Shown here piece after piece: positions 6,830-19,498 of a DNA stretch of 64,000 nucleotides (position 1 is its first letter; each line of letters begins with the position of its first letter). Source of the DNA: Paragordius varius (lineage: Eukaryota > Animalia > Nematomorpha). The position numbers and the translations under genes were made by a program. The notes below the pieces were generated by a model. The model did not search any database. It saw only the letters and a program-made list of their open reading frames with translations, and was not told where the DNA came from. The stretch spans positions 5,394,001-5,458,000 of the forward strand of contig OZ176052.1 in NCBI GenBank assembly GCA_964247055.1, read 5' to 3'.

Positions 6830-9800
6830 CTAATCTAAAAATTTGATTGGATTCAATAGATGATAAGTAGTGGCATTACTAGCGATATTACTTAAATTAA
6901 TCATATTATTTGATCCGTTTTCTTGAATACCGATCAGCTGTTGCCCTTCAGGATTTAGAGGCCCAATATTACGGTACATAAGGTTCATAGGGTTTTCATG
7001 GTGTTGTGTCCTGCTGTTAGATTCAATAATTTCCCCCATATTACTTCTTCTATTGGAATCAGTATTAGCACCGACACCCCCACCACCACCAAGGAAAAAG
7101 GATGAAATTTGATTCTGGTGTTGCTGAAGAACCCCGTTATTTCCCAAATTTTGAAACATGGGAATACAATTATTGTTGTTGTTGACATTCATGGAGGAAG
7201 TATTCTCCAAAGATAGTATTTTACCACCATTGTTCATGATTAAATTGTTGTAAGAAAAATTTGATTCACGTGATGATGGTTCATCTTGATGCATTCTATG
7301 CAGAGTTGGTATCATTGATGAAGAATCAATGTTATTATTCATATTAAGATTATTTAAATTATGATTGTTATGTAAAAAAGATTGGTGATTATTTCCCCCC
7401 ATCATATTAGTAAGTGAATTAAAATGTGTCAAATCCTGAAGGGATGCTATATTTTTAAGGTAGGAGGTTATGTTAATATCCGATAGGATGGTTGAATTAT
7501 TCCCTAAACCAAAAATCTTTGATGATACATTATTAGTGTTAAAATTATTATTATTGATTTGATAAGAATTTGACTGTTGCTGAAGCAACAATTTATTGGC
7601 TATCGATTGAGCTTGTACCAAGAGTGCAGCATGGTTAGGTTGATCTGACGAGGTGCCATCGGCCTTGCCTTTGCATAAAAATAAAATTAACTTATTACAT
7701 ATTTAAATAATTATATAAGATTGAAATCCAATTCCCTTGGAACGAATCCCAATTCGCAAAAACTATCAAATCATAATCCGCTTTCAAAGAAAAGTAGCCG
7801 GCAAAAAATGACAAAAAGATCACTATTTTAAACCCGTTATCAACTAGTATTGGTTGGCATGACAATGCAAGATTTTTGTACATAAGCTTATATAAAAATA
7901 TGATCATATCAGGGAAAATCAAATGATTATAGATTAGCTTTAAACAAGTGGTTTAGGCTATGTGAGGATGTTTATCACTAATATAATGATGTGCAATGGA
8001 TTTATTTTATAGTACATCTAACAAATTATATTTCCCGAATATAAACTTTTTCATTCTAAACTGATGTTTTTAAATAATAAATTTCCTAATATACTTGATG
8101 TTACTCGTGTATATTTCTAATTAATATAAATGTCCATGAAGATAAGCGCAGACTAGTAAGACAACACATATAAAAGGGAAAACCACCAAAAAAATCATTT
8201 TATAAAAAGAAAAAAAAGTCAACTCACAAAAAGTGCACATACTGTAATAAGGATATTTTTTGAAAAAATCGTCTGCTGGATGAGCTTATAGTTTTAAACC
8301 AATATAAATAAAACTTTAATTATATATGAAAAAAGAATCACACCTATTTTAAAAATTTATATTACCATTATTCGTTGCTCCGGTATGGTCATTAATGTCA
8401 CCACCGTTTCCAGTACTGTTATTAAGGATAATGGATGCAGCTATCCTTTGTACATCAAACAGGGGGGACAATAATTTTTCTTCAGCATTTTCGTGTTCTA
8501 GTTCCCCCAATTTTTCAGCCGATTGCAATTGATTATTGGGAGGACTTGAGTTAGAACCATCAAGTGTGGCCCTAAGTATGCTTGAAATATCATTTATACT
8601 ATTGACTGAAGAGGAATCAAACGGGTTTCCGCTGTTAGTGTTAAACAAGAAATCCATTGAAAGTATGGGTGGAACCGAGATATTATTGTTATTATTGTTT
8701 CCATTGTGATGATTATTATGCATTGCATGAAGGCTGGAAAAGGGAGTTAAACCCGTAACAGTACCGTTATTCATAACGCTATCGCTATTATCACCATTGC
8801 TACCTCCTCCTGTACTCATGAAACTCATATTGTGTTTATGATTAAGGGGTGAAACTAGGTGATTATTATTATTATTATTGATAGACAATCCTAAATGCTG
8901 ATTTGTAATATTATTATTGTTGTTTATAAAATCAATCATACTCTGTTGCTGGTGCAAGGATTGAGCAATCAAAACATCCGCACCATTCAATAATTGTCGC
9001 CTAAAATGGTTATCTTGGTTTGGTTCCATCATATTTGGTAACTGCTGACGACCGCCATGAAGAAAGTGTTGAAGATTTGCTGCATTTATATTATTGTTGT
9101 TATTATTACAATTATTAATTTGATTTAATATGTTAGAGGTTTCATTCATGCTGTTTGTATTGGGATTTTGATGATTACCATTAACAAAAAGAGATGGAAG
9201 CATAAAATTAGCAGAGAATTGGTTTAAATCAGAATTATTTGATGAATGCGCTCCTTGGTGTTGAAGATTTTGTCCAAAATCTTGGTGAGCAAAATTTAAG
9301 TCTCTCTGATTAAGTTGTGTCATGTCCATAAAACCATTAGGAATTTGACCTCTTTGTATTTGTAAAAGTTGTTGGTTTAATAGAGTATTATTATCATTAT
9401 TTGTGGTGTTATTCATGGAAGTTAAAATTGTGCTTGGTAATTGTGTTTCTTTGATAATACTGTTAGAATTATGCATATTGCTTTGGTTAGCTAATAATTG
9501 GTGGTCAGATTGGTTTTTAGAAACATAACCATTATTTTTTGATACATGTGATTTTATTGGTGTCGATGAATCTTTTGGATTCATCGGAAACTCTACTGGT
9601 TGAATGTGATTTTTATTGATGGAATTCTTTGTTTGTTGGGGCGTCTTTTGTCCCACTCCAGTGTTAGTAGAAGGAGATGGGGTGATGTGTTTTGGTAAAT
9701 TTTGGTAATTGGAAACAGAAGAAGCGTCCATAATAACAAGTGGTTTGATCCGGTAATTGCCATCATCATATAGTTGATACCTATAAGTCAATAATAGTTT

Positions 9801-12800
9801 TATTTAAATATCAAAAAATATAAAAGTTTTAATGAGGTCTATAAATTAATTGAAATAAAAAAAATGTTGTAATTAACAAAAATGAAAAAAAAAATTCAAA
9901 AATGTGGGTACATTTGTAAGTAGAAGTGAATGAACTTGAATAATTAAGCCTATTTAAAATTAGTAATATTTAAAATTTTCATACGAACTTGTTTTACCCT
10001 TATATCATGAAATTATTTTTTTATTAACATTTATGTTTATTTTTATGATCACAATTTTTGTCCAAAAATGATATAAATTTGTAAATTAATTTACACTTTT
10101 TAACTATATTTTTAATATATTTGTAAGTAGGTAGAAATATTGACCTGAATCGCTGATTTTGATACAAAAATTTATGAACTTTTTGCAAATGAAAGCTAAG
10201 TTTATCAGATCTTGAGTATTTTTTGTCACACATGTGGCATAAGTATCGGAGATTAGTTCTATTGTACTTCTAAAATATTTTATATAATTCATTTTAGATG
10301 AAATTAAATATAAATTGTTTCATATATATATATATATACCTTCCCAGCATTAGCACCACGTTTTTTGACAATTATGGATTCATTGGAAGCGCCAGCATTA
10401 CAATTTTCCACCAAGTTATCTTTTGGTTGTTTTTGATTTATTTTTTTGGTTTTACCATTTTTACTGACACTATTATCTGTGCTAGATGGGATCCTTACAT
10501 TCGTATTGACATTAGATGATGGAATATTATTGCCATTTTGATTGGGATTAACGGGAAGAGATGTAAACATTTCTTCTTTCTTTGATTCATTTATGTTAAA
10601 ACTTTTAGGCGTAAAATTATCAATTTGTTGATTGTGGTTAAAATTTAAGTTATTATATTGATTAATATTGGTTATGTTTGCATTGTGAGGCATTTGTAAG
10701 GGTGATGTTAGTTGAAAAGTATAATTGTTCATATTTTGATGATGGTTGTTATTGTAAAATCCATCCAGGTTATGATATATTTGTGATTGAATATGTCCGG
10801 CTGCATTTGGGTTTGAAGATGGAAGATAAGAGGCCGAACAAAAGTCACCATAATTAGAACCATTTATCATATAGTTTTGAGATGGTACATAATTTATGTT
10901 GTTACTATTTACGGTTCCTGAGACTGTTTTTTGGTGATGTGAAGGATATACAACTTTATCAATACCGGCTAAATTAATAGCATCTTTGATCAAAGTGTTA
11001 AGGGGTCCTTTATAGTTTGCTATATCTTTGGTGGTATTATTGCTATTTAAGTTGAGTGTACTTGTGGTCGCGATAGCATTGTGTGCATCAGAAACTTTAT
11101 GAGCCGATTTTGGGACACGTTTAAAGGTATATAGTTCAAGAAAATTTGGTAAGTGAACTTTGGATAATACCGTTTCTATCGATTCTACAATGTGTGCATT
11201 CATAATTGCTATTTGTTCAGGTGAAAGTTTTGAGGCTTTACCACTATTTTCAATTTCCAACAGATTTACACATTTTAAAAGACTTGATTCAGTGTGATCG
11301 CCATTTTTGTTTTCATTGGCTAAAAGGGTATCGGTATCATCAATATGATGATCAAGTTTGACATTATATATATCGGATTCATAATTGGAGGCAGGAGTAT
11401 TTGAATGCGTTATAGAATGGGGACTTTTGTCCTCTCCTAAGCACGTGTTTGCACCATTTTCTGGAGATGTGGAAGAAATTCCAATTTGTGATTCAAAATG
11501 GTCGTTGCCGATTTCGGAATTAATGGTAGAGACAGCATGGGAAGTTATTAGCCTTTCAAAATTCATATCGGTGCTTTGTGGACAAATGGTGGTAGTTTGT
11601 AACACAGATCGCAATATGGGAGAATTGTTATTGTTGCAATCATTGGTAATACTGTGATAAGTTAGGGGACATATTTTAATATTGTTGGCATTATATGATG
11701 ATGTTGATGAATTAGTCATTAACATAGGAGTTGGGAAATTCGCAACTGATTGTGACTCTATAAGTTTTAGATCAAAAATTAAGTTGTTGTACAAAAATTA
11801 ATAATATATTATAATTTATATCTAATCGCATATTACTCAATGGATTTAATAACTTTAGCTATACATAATTTTGGCAATAAACTTAACAAAAACCGCAGAA
11901 AATCGAATATGTGTATTTACCATAATTTTGTGCCATTTTATCATTATTCTCGAGATGGTTCGAGTTTTCACTTGTAGTATCAACAGTATTCATTAAATTA
12001 TCCATGGTAGATTGATTTGTCATCATTGTATTTTGGGGTAGAGATACAGTTACAAAAGCTAAATTTTCGTTTATTTTATTTTTGTCACCATTAATGTCAT
12101 GAGACATGGGAGTTATGAAAGGAAAAGTGTGAGCTAATCTTACATGACGAGCCAATACTTGTTCTGAATGACATTCATAATCGCAGGGTTTAACCCGTTG
12201 GGAAGTAATAGCAGTGGAAAGATTGGAATCTTTTTTGTTAGATGGTCCTATTTCACCGTTAATGTCAACATGAGGACTACTTGATGTATGCGTTTCACCT
12301 ATGCACGAGCAAATTTTATATAACATTGAACTTAGCATTCAAAATGTATGGACACAATACATGCAAAATACACTGAATTTACAGCATTCTAACGTCGATA
12401 TACCAAACTTACCTCCAATTATTGGGCCACCCCCAATCATTACTGCAGAAGATGTGAGCTTAGCCATGCAAAATGTAAATTTAATAAAGCACCTGGTCCC
12501 ACGGAAATCAAAACTGAAATGTACAAAAATATTTACCTATTTCACAGAGCTATTTAACCTGATTATAATGGAGGAAAAAATCCCAAACGACTGAAACCAA
12601 AGTGTCGTAATTCCAATATATAAAAACAAAGGCGACATGCTTAACTACGCCTCCTACAGACCATTAAAATTACTTTAACATGCAACCAAATTATTCTAAA
12701 TTATAAAAAGGAATATACGTCATCTTTGCTCGATTGACGAAACCCAAATCGGTTTCGAACAGGGTATCCGCACCTCTGATGCCATATTTATTCTTAGAAG

Positions 12801-15800
12801 GCTATAAGAGAACTACAGATGCAAAAATAAAACCTTATATCACATCTTTATTGATTTAAGCCGAGCATTCGATTGCATCCCGCGGTCCATGATCACATTT
12901 GCGTGACGAAAAAAAAGAAACTCAGGAATGGATAATAAAAATAATAAACTTACTATACGAGAACACCACTAATTGCGTGAGAATTCCCGTGGGAAATACC
13001 AATCAATTCCACTGTCAGACTAAATTAACACAGATAAAACAGAGGCTTTAATAACAGGCTTACCTGTAGCTGAAATAAAATTCCCTTGCTCCATTTGTCA
13101 CTCTGAAGTGAAACTTAATTCCATCAAATGCACTAAATGCCAGCCGTGGGTCCATAAAAAGTGCTCACAAATTAAAGTAAGTTTATTAAGCATTGAAAAT
13201 TTTGTATGTAAATGTACAACACCAGATATAAACCCAGACAATCCCACACAAACTGACTACATCCCATCTATAAATCGAAATAGTAAACAAGTACAATTAC
13301 CTGGGTGACACAATAGCAGCTGATATCAATATTAAAAACGGTATAACAACACGAACACACTAAGCTTGGGCCAGATTCCATCAACTCAAGTCTATAATGA
13401 AACGCAAACACTTTTAAACCCAAACAAGGGGAAAATCTACACAATTACCATTCGCCCTGCCCTCACATATGCTAGCGAATGTTGGCCCTTAAATCAAACT
13501 AATGAAAAATAAATTATGTGAAATAGAAAGAAAAATCCTCAACTCATGTCTCACCAATCAGTATTACAATAATAAAACAAATAATAATAAAAGCATACAT
13601 AGTGTGTCAGATCACACCTATGTCTTTTCTCAGAGAAAATCATTTCAGGTACTGGGGCCACATTGAACGCTCAAATGGTTGGATTAACAAAGTTAGATCC
13701 TTTCATCCGAACGGCAATTTAAAACGAGGCAAACCATATCATGATTGGGAAAAAACAATCAGCCATGACTTAAACTTAACTCAATTGACCAAAGACGACT
13801 GTCTCGATCGCAAGTTATTTCGCTAAAGAATTTGGCTAGCACATGCTGGAGAACAACGACTTGATGATGATGAAATGGTCATAAATATCATATAGAGGCA
13901 AATATCATTTTTTCTGCCATATCAAATTTCGGCAATGGGTTTTACAAGTCTGTTAAATTAATCTACAATTATATTAAATTTTCAGTGATACTCAAACCGC
14001 GGCGCGGCGATAATTATCTGCAGTTTTAAAATATTTATTAATATTATATGGTGAAATATCCCTTGGAACACGTAAGATATTTTTTAGCCCTTTAAAATGG
14101 TGAGAGTAACACTGATTTAGATAGAAAATTAATAGACTTTGAAATTGGAGGAGCGAATGCATTATTTAAATATTAGCCATTATAATCTATTATGAAATTC
14201 ATATTAAGACGACTAATGTATTTAACGATATTAATGGCAAAGTTTACAATATTGAATGCAAAACTAAGATTTAACCAAAAGAAAAAACTTATAAAATCAT
14301 ATCAATAATATAATGTTACCATTAATTGTTCCCTGAGAAGTTTGAGTATTTGAGTGAAATGCATTACCATCAGTATCAAGTATGTCCCCATTGTTATCAT
14401 TAATAAGATAATTGCATCGATATACCGGTTTTTCCGATAAAGTTACCGTCGAAGGCAACATACTGTTAGTATTATTATTTTGGATAGTGGTAGAAATTGG
14501 TAAAATAGATACATTTTGAGATTCTAATAATACACCAACGTTGTCCACATTCCCATTGCATATGCTAAAAAATAAAAATTAGATATATATATATATATGG
14601 TTAAATGCTATCAAAAGCAATAAAAAAAACAAAAAGCCAAAAACCTTAACTTCGGGGACTGTAAAGTTGTATGGGAAATTGCATTTTTGGCGTTCAAATT
14701 ATCCAATTCGTCGTATAGCATTGTGGGTTGAGATTCAACAAATTCTTTAGTATTATGTATGGTTCCATTACATATATTGGCTAATAATATAATGGTAAGA
14801 TATACGCAAATTAAACATAGCGCTTATATGCAAAAAGCGTATTATTTGCACAAAAATAAAAACCTTTTTAAAACTAATAAAGATAAAGGCTTAAAAAATA
14901 GCCAACAGCTAATTATTTAAAACCAATTAAATGGTGTATTGCTGAAAAAGTTTACCTTTCCAGTTTTTAAAGGGACTATTTGATGGGTTGTTATCGATAA
15001 ACCAACCCCAATAAACCTTTTTATAATTAACAGCGCCTAAAAACTAATGAGCTCATGATAAACAACATATAGTCCCAAGGTAATTTTGGGTATTATGAAG
15101 CCCTTATGATAAGCAAAAAATAATTAAAAAATCAAAATTTTAATTATTTTCATTTAAAAAATAGGATCAAAAAATCCATACCGATTTCTGAGGAGCGAGT
15201 GCTAATATGGTTATCAAGTGGCGTAACAGAATTTGGCGTTGAAGTGTTACTAATAATACTGTTTAGGCCAGAAGATGGCGGCTTTGTTGCAATTAAATTA
15301 TTGTGAACGGTATCAACGTGCTTTTGTAAATCAAATAGAGCCTTAAATGCCGAAGGACAATACGGACATTTGAAAGGCCGTTCATTTGAATGTCGGTAAC
15401 TAATGTGCTTTTTTATGTTTGCTATGCGGGAACAAACTTGGGGACAATAGGGACATTTGTAACTGGAAGCTATAAAATTAAATAATTAGCTGCGAAATGT
15501 CTTTATGCAATGAAAATTTTTATAAGATTCCATTCTATGATAAATTTGAACACAGACCACGTTAAAAATAGTCGTATCCCACTAAAATGTTTAAAACTAT
15601 TTTACTATTGACCAATAGGTTAACACATAGAATGTTATATTAGGTTATTTTCAATTTCATATAGTCAAGAGATTATTTAATAATTTGAAAGATACATTAC
15701 ATGGTATGTAAAAAAATTTAACCTATCTAAAATACAGTATCCATTTTGGTGTCTATTAACTAATTATATAGCTAACCATATAAGAAATGGTTTATTAAAT

Positions 15801-18800
15801 TTTACAAATATTGATCCACTAAATTAATTCGTAATGCACATATGAAAGAGGACTGGCGTGAGAATTAAGATAGGCTTAATTTGATGGATATTTTGTAATG
15901 CTAAATTTTGAAAATATTATGGCAATTTATGTTAACATTTAACTTTATTGTTGACGTATTTAGATGCGGAACTTTGTGGATTTTTATATTAATAAATAGT
16001 AAAATAGTTATTGTAAGATTAATGTTAATATTTAAATAAAATTTGTAAATATTTTTCATATTAATAAATATCTGTAATATGGCAAAATTTTATTTTATCA
16101 TTTTATAATAAATAATTATAAAACACACAGGTAAAAATATTTGGGTTTTTAAAAATTTATGTAAATTTTAATTTTTTGTTTAGCATTGTTAATGATTAAT
16201 TATTTTAATTTTTTAACATATTAACAAATACAAGTAAAATATTTGGGTTTATGATATTTATGTAAATTTTTGATTTTTTTGTTTTTTTTTTGTTTTATAT
16301 GTTTTGCATTGTTAATTATTAATAATATTTAAATTATTAATAAATACAAGTAAAAATCAATGTTATTTTCCGGTTTTATATGTAATTTTAATTTCCAACC
16401 CTTATGAAAAGTATATCTTTATACACATAAAACATTGCTGTACAGATGCAAAAAAAGTTCAAAGTTGATAATAAAGATTTACTTTTTAGGTCAAACAAAA
16501 AATACTAAACCGTTATTTATAAAATATTTCCAAAGCTATGAAAAAGTATTGAAATAAATACTAATTAAATAAATCTATTTGCATATAAATCTATTAATAA
16601 TATAAATCATATGTTTATGTCGAAAATCATCCAGCAACATCCTGACTAAATCGGTATGATATTTTGGTTATGTTAGATTTGTTACAATTTGAATAATATA
16701 CAAATTACGATGCATCTACATTCGAATCCCTTTTTTGTTGTATCTTTAATGAAAAGAATTAGGATTATTATCAATAGATTATAGCAAGGCAAGGGGCCTA
16801 AGCTTTTCTGACATGGTATGGGGGTGCGAAGAAAAAACAAATTTAGTTTGCATTCTCTATTTGACCAAAGTGAAGAAAATCGTTTTTCGTGTTTTTTTAG
16901 ATTTAGCTGTTAGAAATAAAATGCAGATAGAAAACTCTAATATTATTTTTAATTTCGCAATTTTATGAAGGTATATTAAATTATTATCTTAATTAGTGCC
17001 TCTCACAATGATAATGACTAAATTAGCTGATTTAATTCTACTAGAGAATGCTGGTAAAAATATCTTAATTTTTAAAAATTATCCACATTATCCTTCTTTT
17101 GGGATCCTGTGATAACTTATCCAGTCTTCTTTCAGATATTTTTATCATTATTTTATTAAAACAGAGATAAAGTTAACTGTAATTTTTAAAATTTAGATAA
17201 TATCACCCGGATTATGGAGAATATCGAACAAACTTTAAAATATAATGTTATATTAATAAGACTCTTACACAATTGGAATCAGCGGTGTCAAAATTATCAA
17301 ATTGTCCCGCTATAATAACTAATGATAATAATCATAATTCTTTTCACTCGAAATACAACAAAAAAGAGAAATGAAATGTAAAGGTATCGTAATTTGTATG
17401 TTATCCAAATCGTAGCAAATATAACATTCACGAAATCTCATACCGATACAGTCAATGATATGATGATATAGATCAACCAGGATGTAGCTAGATAATTTCC
17501 AACATTAACTTATGATTTATATTAATAATAAAGCAAATTCATATGTAAATAATTTAATTTTATTTATAATTAGTAATTATTTCGATAATTGATCATAGCT
17601 TTAAAATAAGAATGAATTATAAATAACGGTTAAGTATTTGTGATTTATATAAAAGTAGGTGTTTATTATCAACTTTAAAACCTCTAAAATTTTTAATGTA
17701 AATATACTTTGTTTGCATCTGTACAGCGATGTTTTATCTAAGTATAGATTTATTTTTCATATTGGTTGGTAATTAAAATTACATATAAAATCGGGAAATA
17801 ACATTTATTACCTGTATAAATTAATATGTCAAAAATAGTTAAATATTATTAATTTAAAATCTACATAAATTTCCCAAACCCAAATTTTTTACCTGTATTT
17901 ATTATGTCAAAAATTTAAAAATTATTAATAATTAACAAAACAAAAAAAATTAAAATTTACATAAATTATCACAAATCGAAATATTTTTACAGTGCATTTA
18001 ATAATTATAAATAATAACTATATAAAATGATAAAAATAGGTTGCATAATACATGTATTTATAAATAAAAATATAAATAATTAATTTTAATTAATAAAAAT
18101 TAACATAAATAATCTTAAAATACTTTATTAATTTATTAATTAAACACAAAATTCCATATCTAAATACATATCAACAATAATAAATTCAAATGTTAATATA
18201 AATCGCTATAATATTTCCAAATTTAGCATTCAAAATATCCATAAAACTAAGCCTATGTTAATTCTCACGCCAACCCTCTTTCATATGTGCAGTATAAAAT
18301 AATTTTGTGGATCAGTACTTTTAACATTTAATAAACCATTTCTTTTATATGGCTAGCTATATAATTAGTTAACAGACACCAAAATGAATACTCTATATAA
18401 TGAGTATCATATTTGTTAATTCGAAAAAAACATTACATATTTTTCAATATGCATGCAGTGATTCCGTACAAAATGAATATAATTAGTATTTAAACAAGTC
18501 TTTATGTATAATTGGGAGTAAGACAAATGATCTAATACATAAAAATCTTACTATGATATTCTGAATGCGCTTTAAGGATACGTTGGGATGCAAATGGTTT
18601 ATTACAATGTTGACAAAGATAGCGTTGATCTATTCATAAAAAATGCTTGTTTATTCGATTCAAACCAATTACGATTATGATATTCATTAAACAAATTATT
18701 ACTGTCTTCGGTGACTTGTCGCCGTATATGATCAAGAAATTTAGCACGTGATGCATAAAGACATCCGCAGTTTGGGCAAGCAATAACTTTTTCCTGAGTG

Positions 18801-19498
18801 TGAGATCTAACATGTTCCTCAAGTTTGTTTTTATATCGAAATTCGTTATTACAACCTAAAATTATTACCCATTAAATAAATATTTATACCTTTCCAATCA
18901 CAATGATATCTTTTTTCTAAAATGTCATCATCAATACGTTTTTCCAAATCAATGTGTTGTTGAACATGTTGATAAAATATTATGTAATTTTCAGTTTGAA
19001 ACTATTTTATAAAACAAAAATTATGATGGTAACACATATGCTTTAAAAAGTTTATTAATCTTACATCACAATCACCTTTAAACCATTGACATTTAATTGG
19101 ATCTAATGGCTCTGGAATAATGTTAGAACTAAATGAATCCATAGCACATTGTTGAGTTTGCAAATCAATAAGAGTTTTTCCTATGGATTTTAATTTAGTA
19201 TGAAATGCGTGAAAATATATGTGCCTGAGCAATTCTGATGCATAATCAGCTACGTAATCACATTTAGTCCATTTACATAGAGAGCCTAAAAATCAGGAAT
19301 AATTTTACTTATATTATAATCATGCTGTCGCTTCAAAATTTTAGATATATCTCCCGAAAATTCCTTACAAATATGGTCGTTTTCAATGTGAGAAACAAAA
19401 GGTAAAACATCATTAAAATTTTGATTACAGGAATTCCATTCGCATTGTAAAAATAGCTCTTTTACCGTAAAAAACTTTGGAATTTTGAGATCATCCAT
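6830..19498 (-). CDS. HINFP: Histone H4 transcription factor HINFP/MIZF orthologue, C2H2 zinc-finger protein with very large low-complexity insertions
   Basis: Spliced exons give [31 protein letters not shown]...[19 protein letters not shown]...[20 protein letters not shown]...[10 protein letters not shown] and [21 protein letters not shown]...[10 protein letters not shown], collinear with vertebrate HINFP. Exons: 19498-19309 (or -19369), 19285-19065, 19001-18890, 18855-18703, 18629-18552, 15469-15182, possibly 15102-15067 and 15036-14956, 14780-14651, 14564-14320, 12298-11921, 11757-10340, 10269-10145, 9780-8366, 7668-6830. Intron phases are consistent. Confidence 0.92.
12340..13875 (+). mobile_element. 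5'-truncated, internally deleted RTE-clade LINE, antisense in a HINFP intron
   Basis: RT motifs [36 protein letters not shown] and [10 protein letters not shown] Cys-rich CSIC...[13 protein letters not shown] insert. C-terminal [13 protein letters not shown] and RGKPYHDW. Ends in a (GAT)n tail. Many stops and frameshifts. Confidence 0.9.
15735..18393. mobile_element. 2.66-kb foldback element with ~1.05-kb diverged TIRs in HINFP intron 5
   Basis: Ends are TA|CAGTATCCATTTTGGTGTC ... GACACCAAAATGAATACTC|TA. 15735-16790 is the diverged reverse complement of 17310-18393. No transposase ORF was seen in the spacer. Confidence 0.8.

Follow-up and report, generated by a model that had tools for sequence, protein, structure and literature searches.

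This study concerns a zinc-finger gene in a stretch of 64,000 nucleotides (nt) from the worm Paragordius varius (assembly GCA_964247055.1, contig OZ176052.1, positions 5,394,001 to 5,458,000), which we refer to as the window and whose guanine-cytosine (GC) content is 26%; all positions are counted from its first letter. The minus strand of the window carries a gene of the HINFP/MIZF type in which the eighth C2H2 zinc finger is divided between two exons, with 69 residues between its two cysteines. We suggest, tentatively and at somewhat short of an even chance, that finger 8 may be an intact finger of the long-loop kind in which the four original ligands still hold zinc. This reading is favoured because the ligands, the linker, the aromatic residue and the X12 and X4 spacings are all kept, because the Zic proteins offer a precedent and because the cost of closing the loop would be modest. 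It is also favoured because the motif around the first cysteine (Cys1), lying in an asparagine-rich stretch, should decay if it were useless. Long-loop C2H2 fingers are of a known kind, but none has been described before in the HINFP/MIZF family. The parts of the gene on which the argument turns are the following.

14320-14523, minus strand: exon 7 (14320-14564 if the small exon 6b described below is used), supported by a 93-codon open frame and an enumeration of in-frame junctions
14414-14443, minus strand: N-terminal part of finger 8, comprising the linker, the first strand and Cys1 (codon 14416-14414), placed by the vertebrate linker and strand alignment and by the Mizf alignment
14320-14413, minus strand: first half of the insert, 31 codons and 1 nt, GC 0.31, supported by its open frame and by polymorphisms
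12299-14319, minus strand: intron 7, phase 1, GT-AG, 2,021 nt, from the spliced model
11921-12298, minus strand: exon 8, 378 nt, phase 1 to phase 1, from the spliced model
12186-12298, minus strand: second half of the insert, 2 nt and 37 codons, GC 0.40, supported by its open frame and the spliced model
12129-12185, minus strand: C-terminal part of finger 8, comprising the second cysteine (Cys2, 12185-12183), X12, His, X4 and His, supported by the Mizf alignment and a shuffle test

The initial annotation of this DNA had placed the motifs PVYRCNY and C-X12-H-X4-H in separate exons and had counted 69 low-complexity residues between the cysteines, and both statements agree with the open frames, the codon positions and the spliced model. 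PVYRCNY lies in a 93-codon open frame (14578-14300) and the C-X12-H-X4-H half in a 151-codon open frame (12338-11886), with the end of the motif at 12129. At the stop frequency of the introns of this gene, open frames of these lengths would be met by chance with probabilities of 5e-4 and 4e-6, respectively. Joining the donor atg/GTAACA (intron from 14319) to the acceptor GCATAG/gtg (exon from 12298), both in phase 1, leaves exactly 69 residues between the cysteines. This insert includes 10 Asn, 9 Ser, 8 Thr, 6 Ile, 6 Asp and 6 Gly, and has neither cysteine nor tryptophan, while the Cys1 motif keeps P, Y, R and C, all of them rare residues, in GC-rich codons inside an Asn-rich stretch. When compared with the vertebrate sequence THSKEPTYHCEF, the N-terminal half of finger 8 aligns without gaps at a score that only 1 shuffle of exon 7 in 5000 attained. 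An ungapped alignment to its vertebrate counterpart, with the cysteines and histidines in register, was also obtained for the C-terminal half, at a score reached by 215 of 5000 shuffles.

The sequence alignment of the finger regions of Mizf, which is HINFP, from human, zebrafish, Trichoplax, Ciona, Drosophila and C. elegans (Hatayama and Aruga 2010, PMC2837044 Additional file 5) allows the finger to be read position by position. Finger 8 is C-X4-C-X12-H-X4-H in every aligned Mizf except that of C. elegans, which has C-X2-C, and the Trichoplax and Ciona proteins read C-D-Y at the second cysteine (PMC2837044). Like finger 8 of these other animals, the worm finger lies between fingers 7 and 9 and shows Y-x-C, a D/x-Y directly after Cys2, X12 and H-X4-H. 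However, there are 4 residues between the cysteines in the other animals (2 in C. elegans) and finger 8 of the vertebrate HINFP locus is not interrupted by an intron, whereas the worm has 69 residues (at least 30 under any of the splicing models considered below), a phase-1 intron and an additional cysteine at +4 after Cys2 (codon 12173-12171). The worm finger keeps the SEKP linker, Y-R-C and the DY that follows Cys2, and its core positions, namely a tyrosine two residues before Cys1 and, after Cys2, a tyrosine at +2 and a leucine at +10, fit the published F/Y and I/L. The classical spacing of two to five residues between cysteines is absent from finger 8, and the part Cys2-X12-His-X3-5-His is present. 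Because the X12 and X4 spacings and the C-D-Y match published Mizf, the cysteine of KPC is, as judged from the alignment, the canonical second ligand. The +4 cysteine is absent from all six published Mizf sequences and is lineage-specific. In Pfam, the C-terminal half gives only a sub-threshold partial match to zf-C2H2_REST, covering profile positions 6-24 and lacking the positions of the first cysteine.

The assignment of the gene as a HINFP/MIZF orthologue is well supported, because three lines of evidence agree: the published Mizf alignment, the position of an intron shared with a vertebrate HINFP locus and a motif that follows finger 9. The model contains nine collinear C2H2 fingers, finger 8 being the split one, and between fingers 4 and 5 stands a pseudo-finger, CPxCG...KFxDHxRRQ, which ends in KFLDHIRRQ in the worm. 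Fingers 1-2 and 3-4 form two tandem CWCH2 pairs (including CDWKGC), and the finger order, these tandem knuckles, the pseudo-finger, fingers 5-7 and finger 9 all agree with the published alignment. Fingers 1-7 are compact (residues 19-307), collinear and arranged about as in other Mizf proteins. To obtain a vertebrate reference, a degenerate DNA pattern for KF[LF]DHIRRQ was run against metagenome contigs and returned seven loci. Three of them (L008, L009 and L013) represent one vertebrate HINFP locus, and the other four are unrelated. We take this locus to be non-human, given its many differences from the published human protein, and finger 8 and the positions of introns were compared against it. 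The 34-nt intron 3 of the worm gene shares its position, following the WK codons in the knuckle of finger 4, and its phase 1 with an intron of about 450 nt in L008, and the motif directly after finger 9 matches PRFRY-KEHEDGY of L008, with RFRY shared. Searches at the protein level were less informative. Word searches with single frames of exons 8, 9 and 6 gave no match, within searched lengths that excluded proteins of about 1500 residues and with a cut-off that was too strict for exon 6. A search with the exon of fingers 3-4 gave, among the 150 matches listed, only poly-zinc-finger proteins with many summed matches and no HINFP, and a metagenome scan with the exon 4 peptide had no match. According to Miele et al. 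2005, as cited in PMC10730174, HINFP acts together with NPAT and binds the promoter of histone H4.

Several of our observations weigh against an intact finger. The 69 residues are about twice the longest published loop between cysteines, and finger 8 lacks both the knuckle tryptophan and the partner finger that stabilise the Zic case. The +4 cysteine is what a local rewiring of the finger would need. All four single-nucleotide polymorphisms (SNPs) in the loop (14367, 14368, 14373 and 12280) are non-synonymous, in rough counts that cover the best-supported 40 of about 280 differences. DNA filed under a second species label hardly differs in either half of the finger and so says nothing about the long-term conservation of YRC. 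The runs that carry the stretch are DNA contigs, and the splicing is predicted from DNA alone. AlphaFold2 prediction of exon 8 alone gave a confidence (predicted local distance difference test, pLDDT) of about 38 and no secondary structure, although a single-sequence control with fingers 6-7 was also weak (50-70, with helices but no hairpins).

Some of these observations would be accommodated by a relic or rewired finger, which we regard as a serious possibility though hardly a probable one. Cys1 would then be out of use, and the C-terminal half would either use C-X3-C-X8-H-X4-H or persist as a zinc-free helix, with YRC surviving only through the young age of the insert or through another role of the motif. 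It fits this explanation that the +4 cysteine, absent from the six published Mizf sequences, sits in exactly the finger whose first ligand has been displaced, and that the loop exceeds all published cases. Finger 8 is also the least regular of the Mizf fingers, as the C-X2-C of C. elegans illustrates. The non-synonymous SNPs of the loop count on the same side, but they fit an unconstrained linker as well as a decaying region. However, the X12 and H-X4-H spacings are kept from the KPC cysteine and not from the +4 cysteine. A spacing of 8 residues from cysteine to histidine misfits the classical beta-beta-alpha geometry expressed in the PROSITE C2H2 pattern. An extra cysteine that is no ligand occurs in vertebrate finger 8 too, at +8, and the motif of linker, strand and Cys1 is conserved well beyond chance. 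In a search of solved structures with the half finger alone no zinc-finger chain was matched, nor did AlphaFold2 fold it (a weak test). The initial annotation had offered a functional C-X69-C finger or a rewired one that uses the local cysteine pair; its anatomical reading stands, since Cys2 is canonical, the X12 and X4 spacings hold and YRC is as in the human and vertebrate finger, but its either/or overlooks a relic finger in which Cys1 has stopped binding zinc.

An improbable alternative is that splicing has been mis-modelled and that the messenger RNA lacks the 69-residue loop, either through skipping of exon 7 (with exon 6b) or through an AT-AC intron at 14412-12197. Skipping would keep the frame, as the end of exon 6 and the start of exon 8 are both in phase 1, and exons 7 and 8 each run from phase 1 to phase 1. 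The initial annotation had pointed to an alternative donor shortly after YRC as a threat to the split. Among introns starting within 6 codons after Cys1 and ending within 6 codons before either downstream cysteine, we found no GT-AG or GC-AG intron that restores C-X2-6-C, and the split therefore survives this check. Single-intron GT/GC-AG models that are in frame and free of stops leave 30, 36, 46, 52, 53 or 69 residues between the cysteines.

The AT-AC intron deserves a separate comment, because the pair 14412-12197 lies exactly where it would restore C-X4-C in the form of C-RVKP-C. There are, however, seven AT-AC pairs in the stretch, which is the chance expectation for such an AT-rich composition. 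U12-type AT-AC introns have a near-invariant 5' site, ATATCCTT, and a branch site, TCCTTAAC, 10-15 nt before the 3' end. The 5' site of 14412-12197 is ATTATCTT rather than ATATCCTT, its 3' end is preceded by CTATTACTTCCCAAC, and no TCCTTAAC-like branch site is found 10-15 nt before that end. A U12-type intron 14412-12197 was accordingly rejected as unlikely. The genome does contain a full-length U6atac small nuclear RNA gene (G000:C2:4857045-4857187; 66 bits against a cut-off of 33), which speaks for this alternative because it suggests that a minor spliceosome is probably present; U12 small nuclear RNA was not found, in a search that scored just 42 candidates out of about 10,000 and whose control gave no signal either.

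Further arguments speak against loss of the complete insert: both of its halves are open in the frame of the gene, have exon-like GC and lie in frames that close near the predicted splice sites. With introns showing 0.078 stops per codon, the halves would be open by chance with probabilities of about 0.08 and 0.05. Their GC of 0.31 and 0.40 compares with 0.10-0.28 in the other introns, and the open frames close 6 codons past the predicted GT and 13 codons past the predicted AG. The loop halves thus look coding. The only other GT in the loop, at 14367, is replaced in a common allele that keeps the frame intact, which also counts against mis-modelled splicing. A 35-nt GT...AG micro-intron at 14367-14333 was rejected, since it would lead the frame to a stop and one allele lacks its GT.

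The history of finger 8 might be pictured as follows. The insert would have arisen in the worm lineage, either because low-complexity coding sequence grew around a phase-1 intron that had recently been acquired or because a splice site slid into that intron, and a copy of a long interspersed nuclear element (LINE) would have landed in intron 7 later. If the finger is intact, as we prefer to think, the insert would leave the hairpin at its tip as a disordered loop, like that of Zic finger 1. By loop-closure scaling, a loop of 69 rather than 4 residues might cost about 2.5-4 kcal/mol, which would weaken the zinc site but not abolish it and would be small against the usual stability of zinc sites. 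We also consider it possible, though on balance doubtful, that this is a DNA-binding C2H2 finger assembling on zinc across the longest loop between ligands known for the fold, one of 69 residues, disordered and split by an intron, and that exon skipping could switch between a full finger and one lacking Cys1. What makes such a toggle of Cys1 conceivable is the common phase of the exons on either side.

Inserts between the cysteine ligands of a zinc finger have precedents in other proteins. Finger 1 of Zic has 6-38 residues between its cysteines (PMC2222250), and tCWCH2 fingers have 4-34, the insert appearing as an extra loop in the ZIC3 structure 2RPC (PMC2837044). Like finger 8 of the worm, these fingers carry a long, variable and poorly conserved insert between cysteine ligands that loops out from the hairpin. 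However, the Zic finger has its tryptophan in the knuckle and packs on finger 2, whereas worm finger 8 does neither and has an insert about twice as long that contains an intron. Another parallel is provided by Plasmodium and Dictyostelium, in whose very AT-rich genomes conserved proteins carry Asn-rich low-complexity inserts. Those inserts resemble the ones in the worm HINFP in being rich in N, S and T, hydrophilic and placed at surface loops and linkers of conserved domains. In contrast to them, the present case comes from an animal genome, and one of its inserts separates two metal ligands instead of extending an ordinary surface loop.

The worm HINFP is three times the length of the human protein. 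Three N/S/T-rich inserts follow finger 7, each holding an intron: about 76 residues (more with exon 6b) from finger 7 to the finger-8 linker, the 69 residues inside the finger-8 knuckle, and about 570 residues between fingers 8 and 9, mostly in exon 9. In exon 9 there are 10 synonymous and 10 non-synonymous SNPs among the same best-supported differences, where 21% synonymous would be expected. This exon is coding and constrained, since synonymous SNPs exceed the expectation. Its 473 residues gave no homologue in the word search and no Pfam family; a non-repetitive stretch within it might be a lineage-specific domain.

If finger 8 is functional, the known tolerance of C2H2 fingers for inserts between metal ligands would be roughly doubled, and the finger would offer a natural test case for the relation between loop length and zinc affinity. 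The gene suggests that in a very AT-rich animal genome low-complexity growth around introns can separate the members of a conserved DNA-binding array, here fingers 7, 8 and 9 of a regulator of histone genes, with the ligands spared. If finger 8 is a relic, on the other hand, it would be a case of ordinary domain decay in a fast-evolving lineage.

The gene model was built by placing GT-AG introns by hand on a chain of long open frames with C2H2 fingers on the minus strand (19498-8349) and then checking them by script. It has 11 exons (12 with exon 6b) and 1532 codons, is frame-continuous without internal stop, and all of its 10 introns are canonical GT-AG. The 110.6-Mb assembly contains the gene only once. 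Its remaining features are listed here.

8349-19498, minus strand: whole HINFP/MIZF-like gene, from the frame-continuous all-GT-AG model, with the stop codon at 8351-8349
19498-19309, minus strand: exon 1, from the spliced model
19285-19065, minus strand: exon 2, from the spliced model
19001-18890, minus strand: exon 3, from the spliced model
18855-18703, minus strand: exon 4, from the spliced model
18629-18552, minus strand: exon 5, from the spliced model
15182-15469, minus strand: exon 6, with fingers 6 and 7 of canonical spacing and then the start of the spacer, supported by Pfam zf-C2H2 (6.3e-09), a pattern map and tblastn to the vertebrate HINFP locus
10340-11757, minus strand: exon 9, the 473-residue N-rich spacer between fingers 8 and 9, from the spliced model
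10145-10269, minus strand: exon 10, with finger 9, supported by Pfam, tblastn to the vertebrate HINFP locus and the model
9780-8352, minus strand: exon 11 (stop 8351-8349), with the post-finger-9 motif and then a long N-rich tail, supported by the match to vertebrate PRFRY/KEHEDGY

The initial annotation had given exon 7 as 14564-14320. Its end at 14320 is borne out by the model, but its start is not unless exon 6b is used, as 14523 is the only acceptor that joins exon 7 directly in frame with exon 6. The strong acceptor at 14564 does not keep the frame of exon 6 and can be used only via an extra small upstream exon. A possible exon 6b of this kind (about 14780/14744-14651, minus strand) lies in a 70-codon open frame in intron 6 and joins exon 6 to the acceptor 14564 in frame. 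The choice between 14523 and 14564 with exon 6b leaves finger 8 unchanged. Just upstream of exon 7 is an (AT)n microsatellite (14640-14580) whose length varies between contigs within runs. Two of the introns are GT-AG micro-introns, of 23 nt (19308-19286, minus strand) and 34 nt (18889-18856, minus strand). Finger 3 (19090-19065, minus strand) has X6 between its cysteines (CQWFKGDC) against four in published Mizf, a second, small knuckle expansion. The contigs L008, L009 and L013 that contain the vertebrate HINFP locus are JGI metagenome contigs, and the locus presumably derives from host or environmental animal DNA.

A LINE-containing intron of about 2 kb between the two halves of finger 8, as reported in the initial annotation, is present: intron 7 measures 2,021 nt and includes a fragment of a dispersed family that encodes RVT_1.

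12317-13880, plus strand: LINE fragment, 5'-truncated, decayed and antisense to the gene, supported by depth, genomic copies and RVT_1 in an intact relative copy

In DNA contigs of four runs the depth over 12317-13880 is 10-100 times that of the flanks. Contigs of three runs (X1, X2 and X3, one of them under another species label) carry a joint from 12316 to 13881 with 17 other letters between, and in this empty-site allele intron 7 is about 474 nt long. The insertion is thus polymorphic for presence and absence and young, because three runs carry the empty-site joint. A recognisable transposon origin of the 69-residue insert itself was rejected, as exon 7, exon 8 and what remains of the intron outside the LINE each occur in a single copy. 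At least 40 copies of the LINE family, about 90% identical, are present in the genome. An intact copy (L005:3-2354) has a 784-residue frame with an RVT_1 reverse transcriptase (1.3e-30) and a PHD-like finger, and the family may still be active, because the frame of this copy is intact and the copy is 99.6% identical to another (L006) over 2.4 kb.

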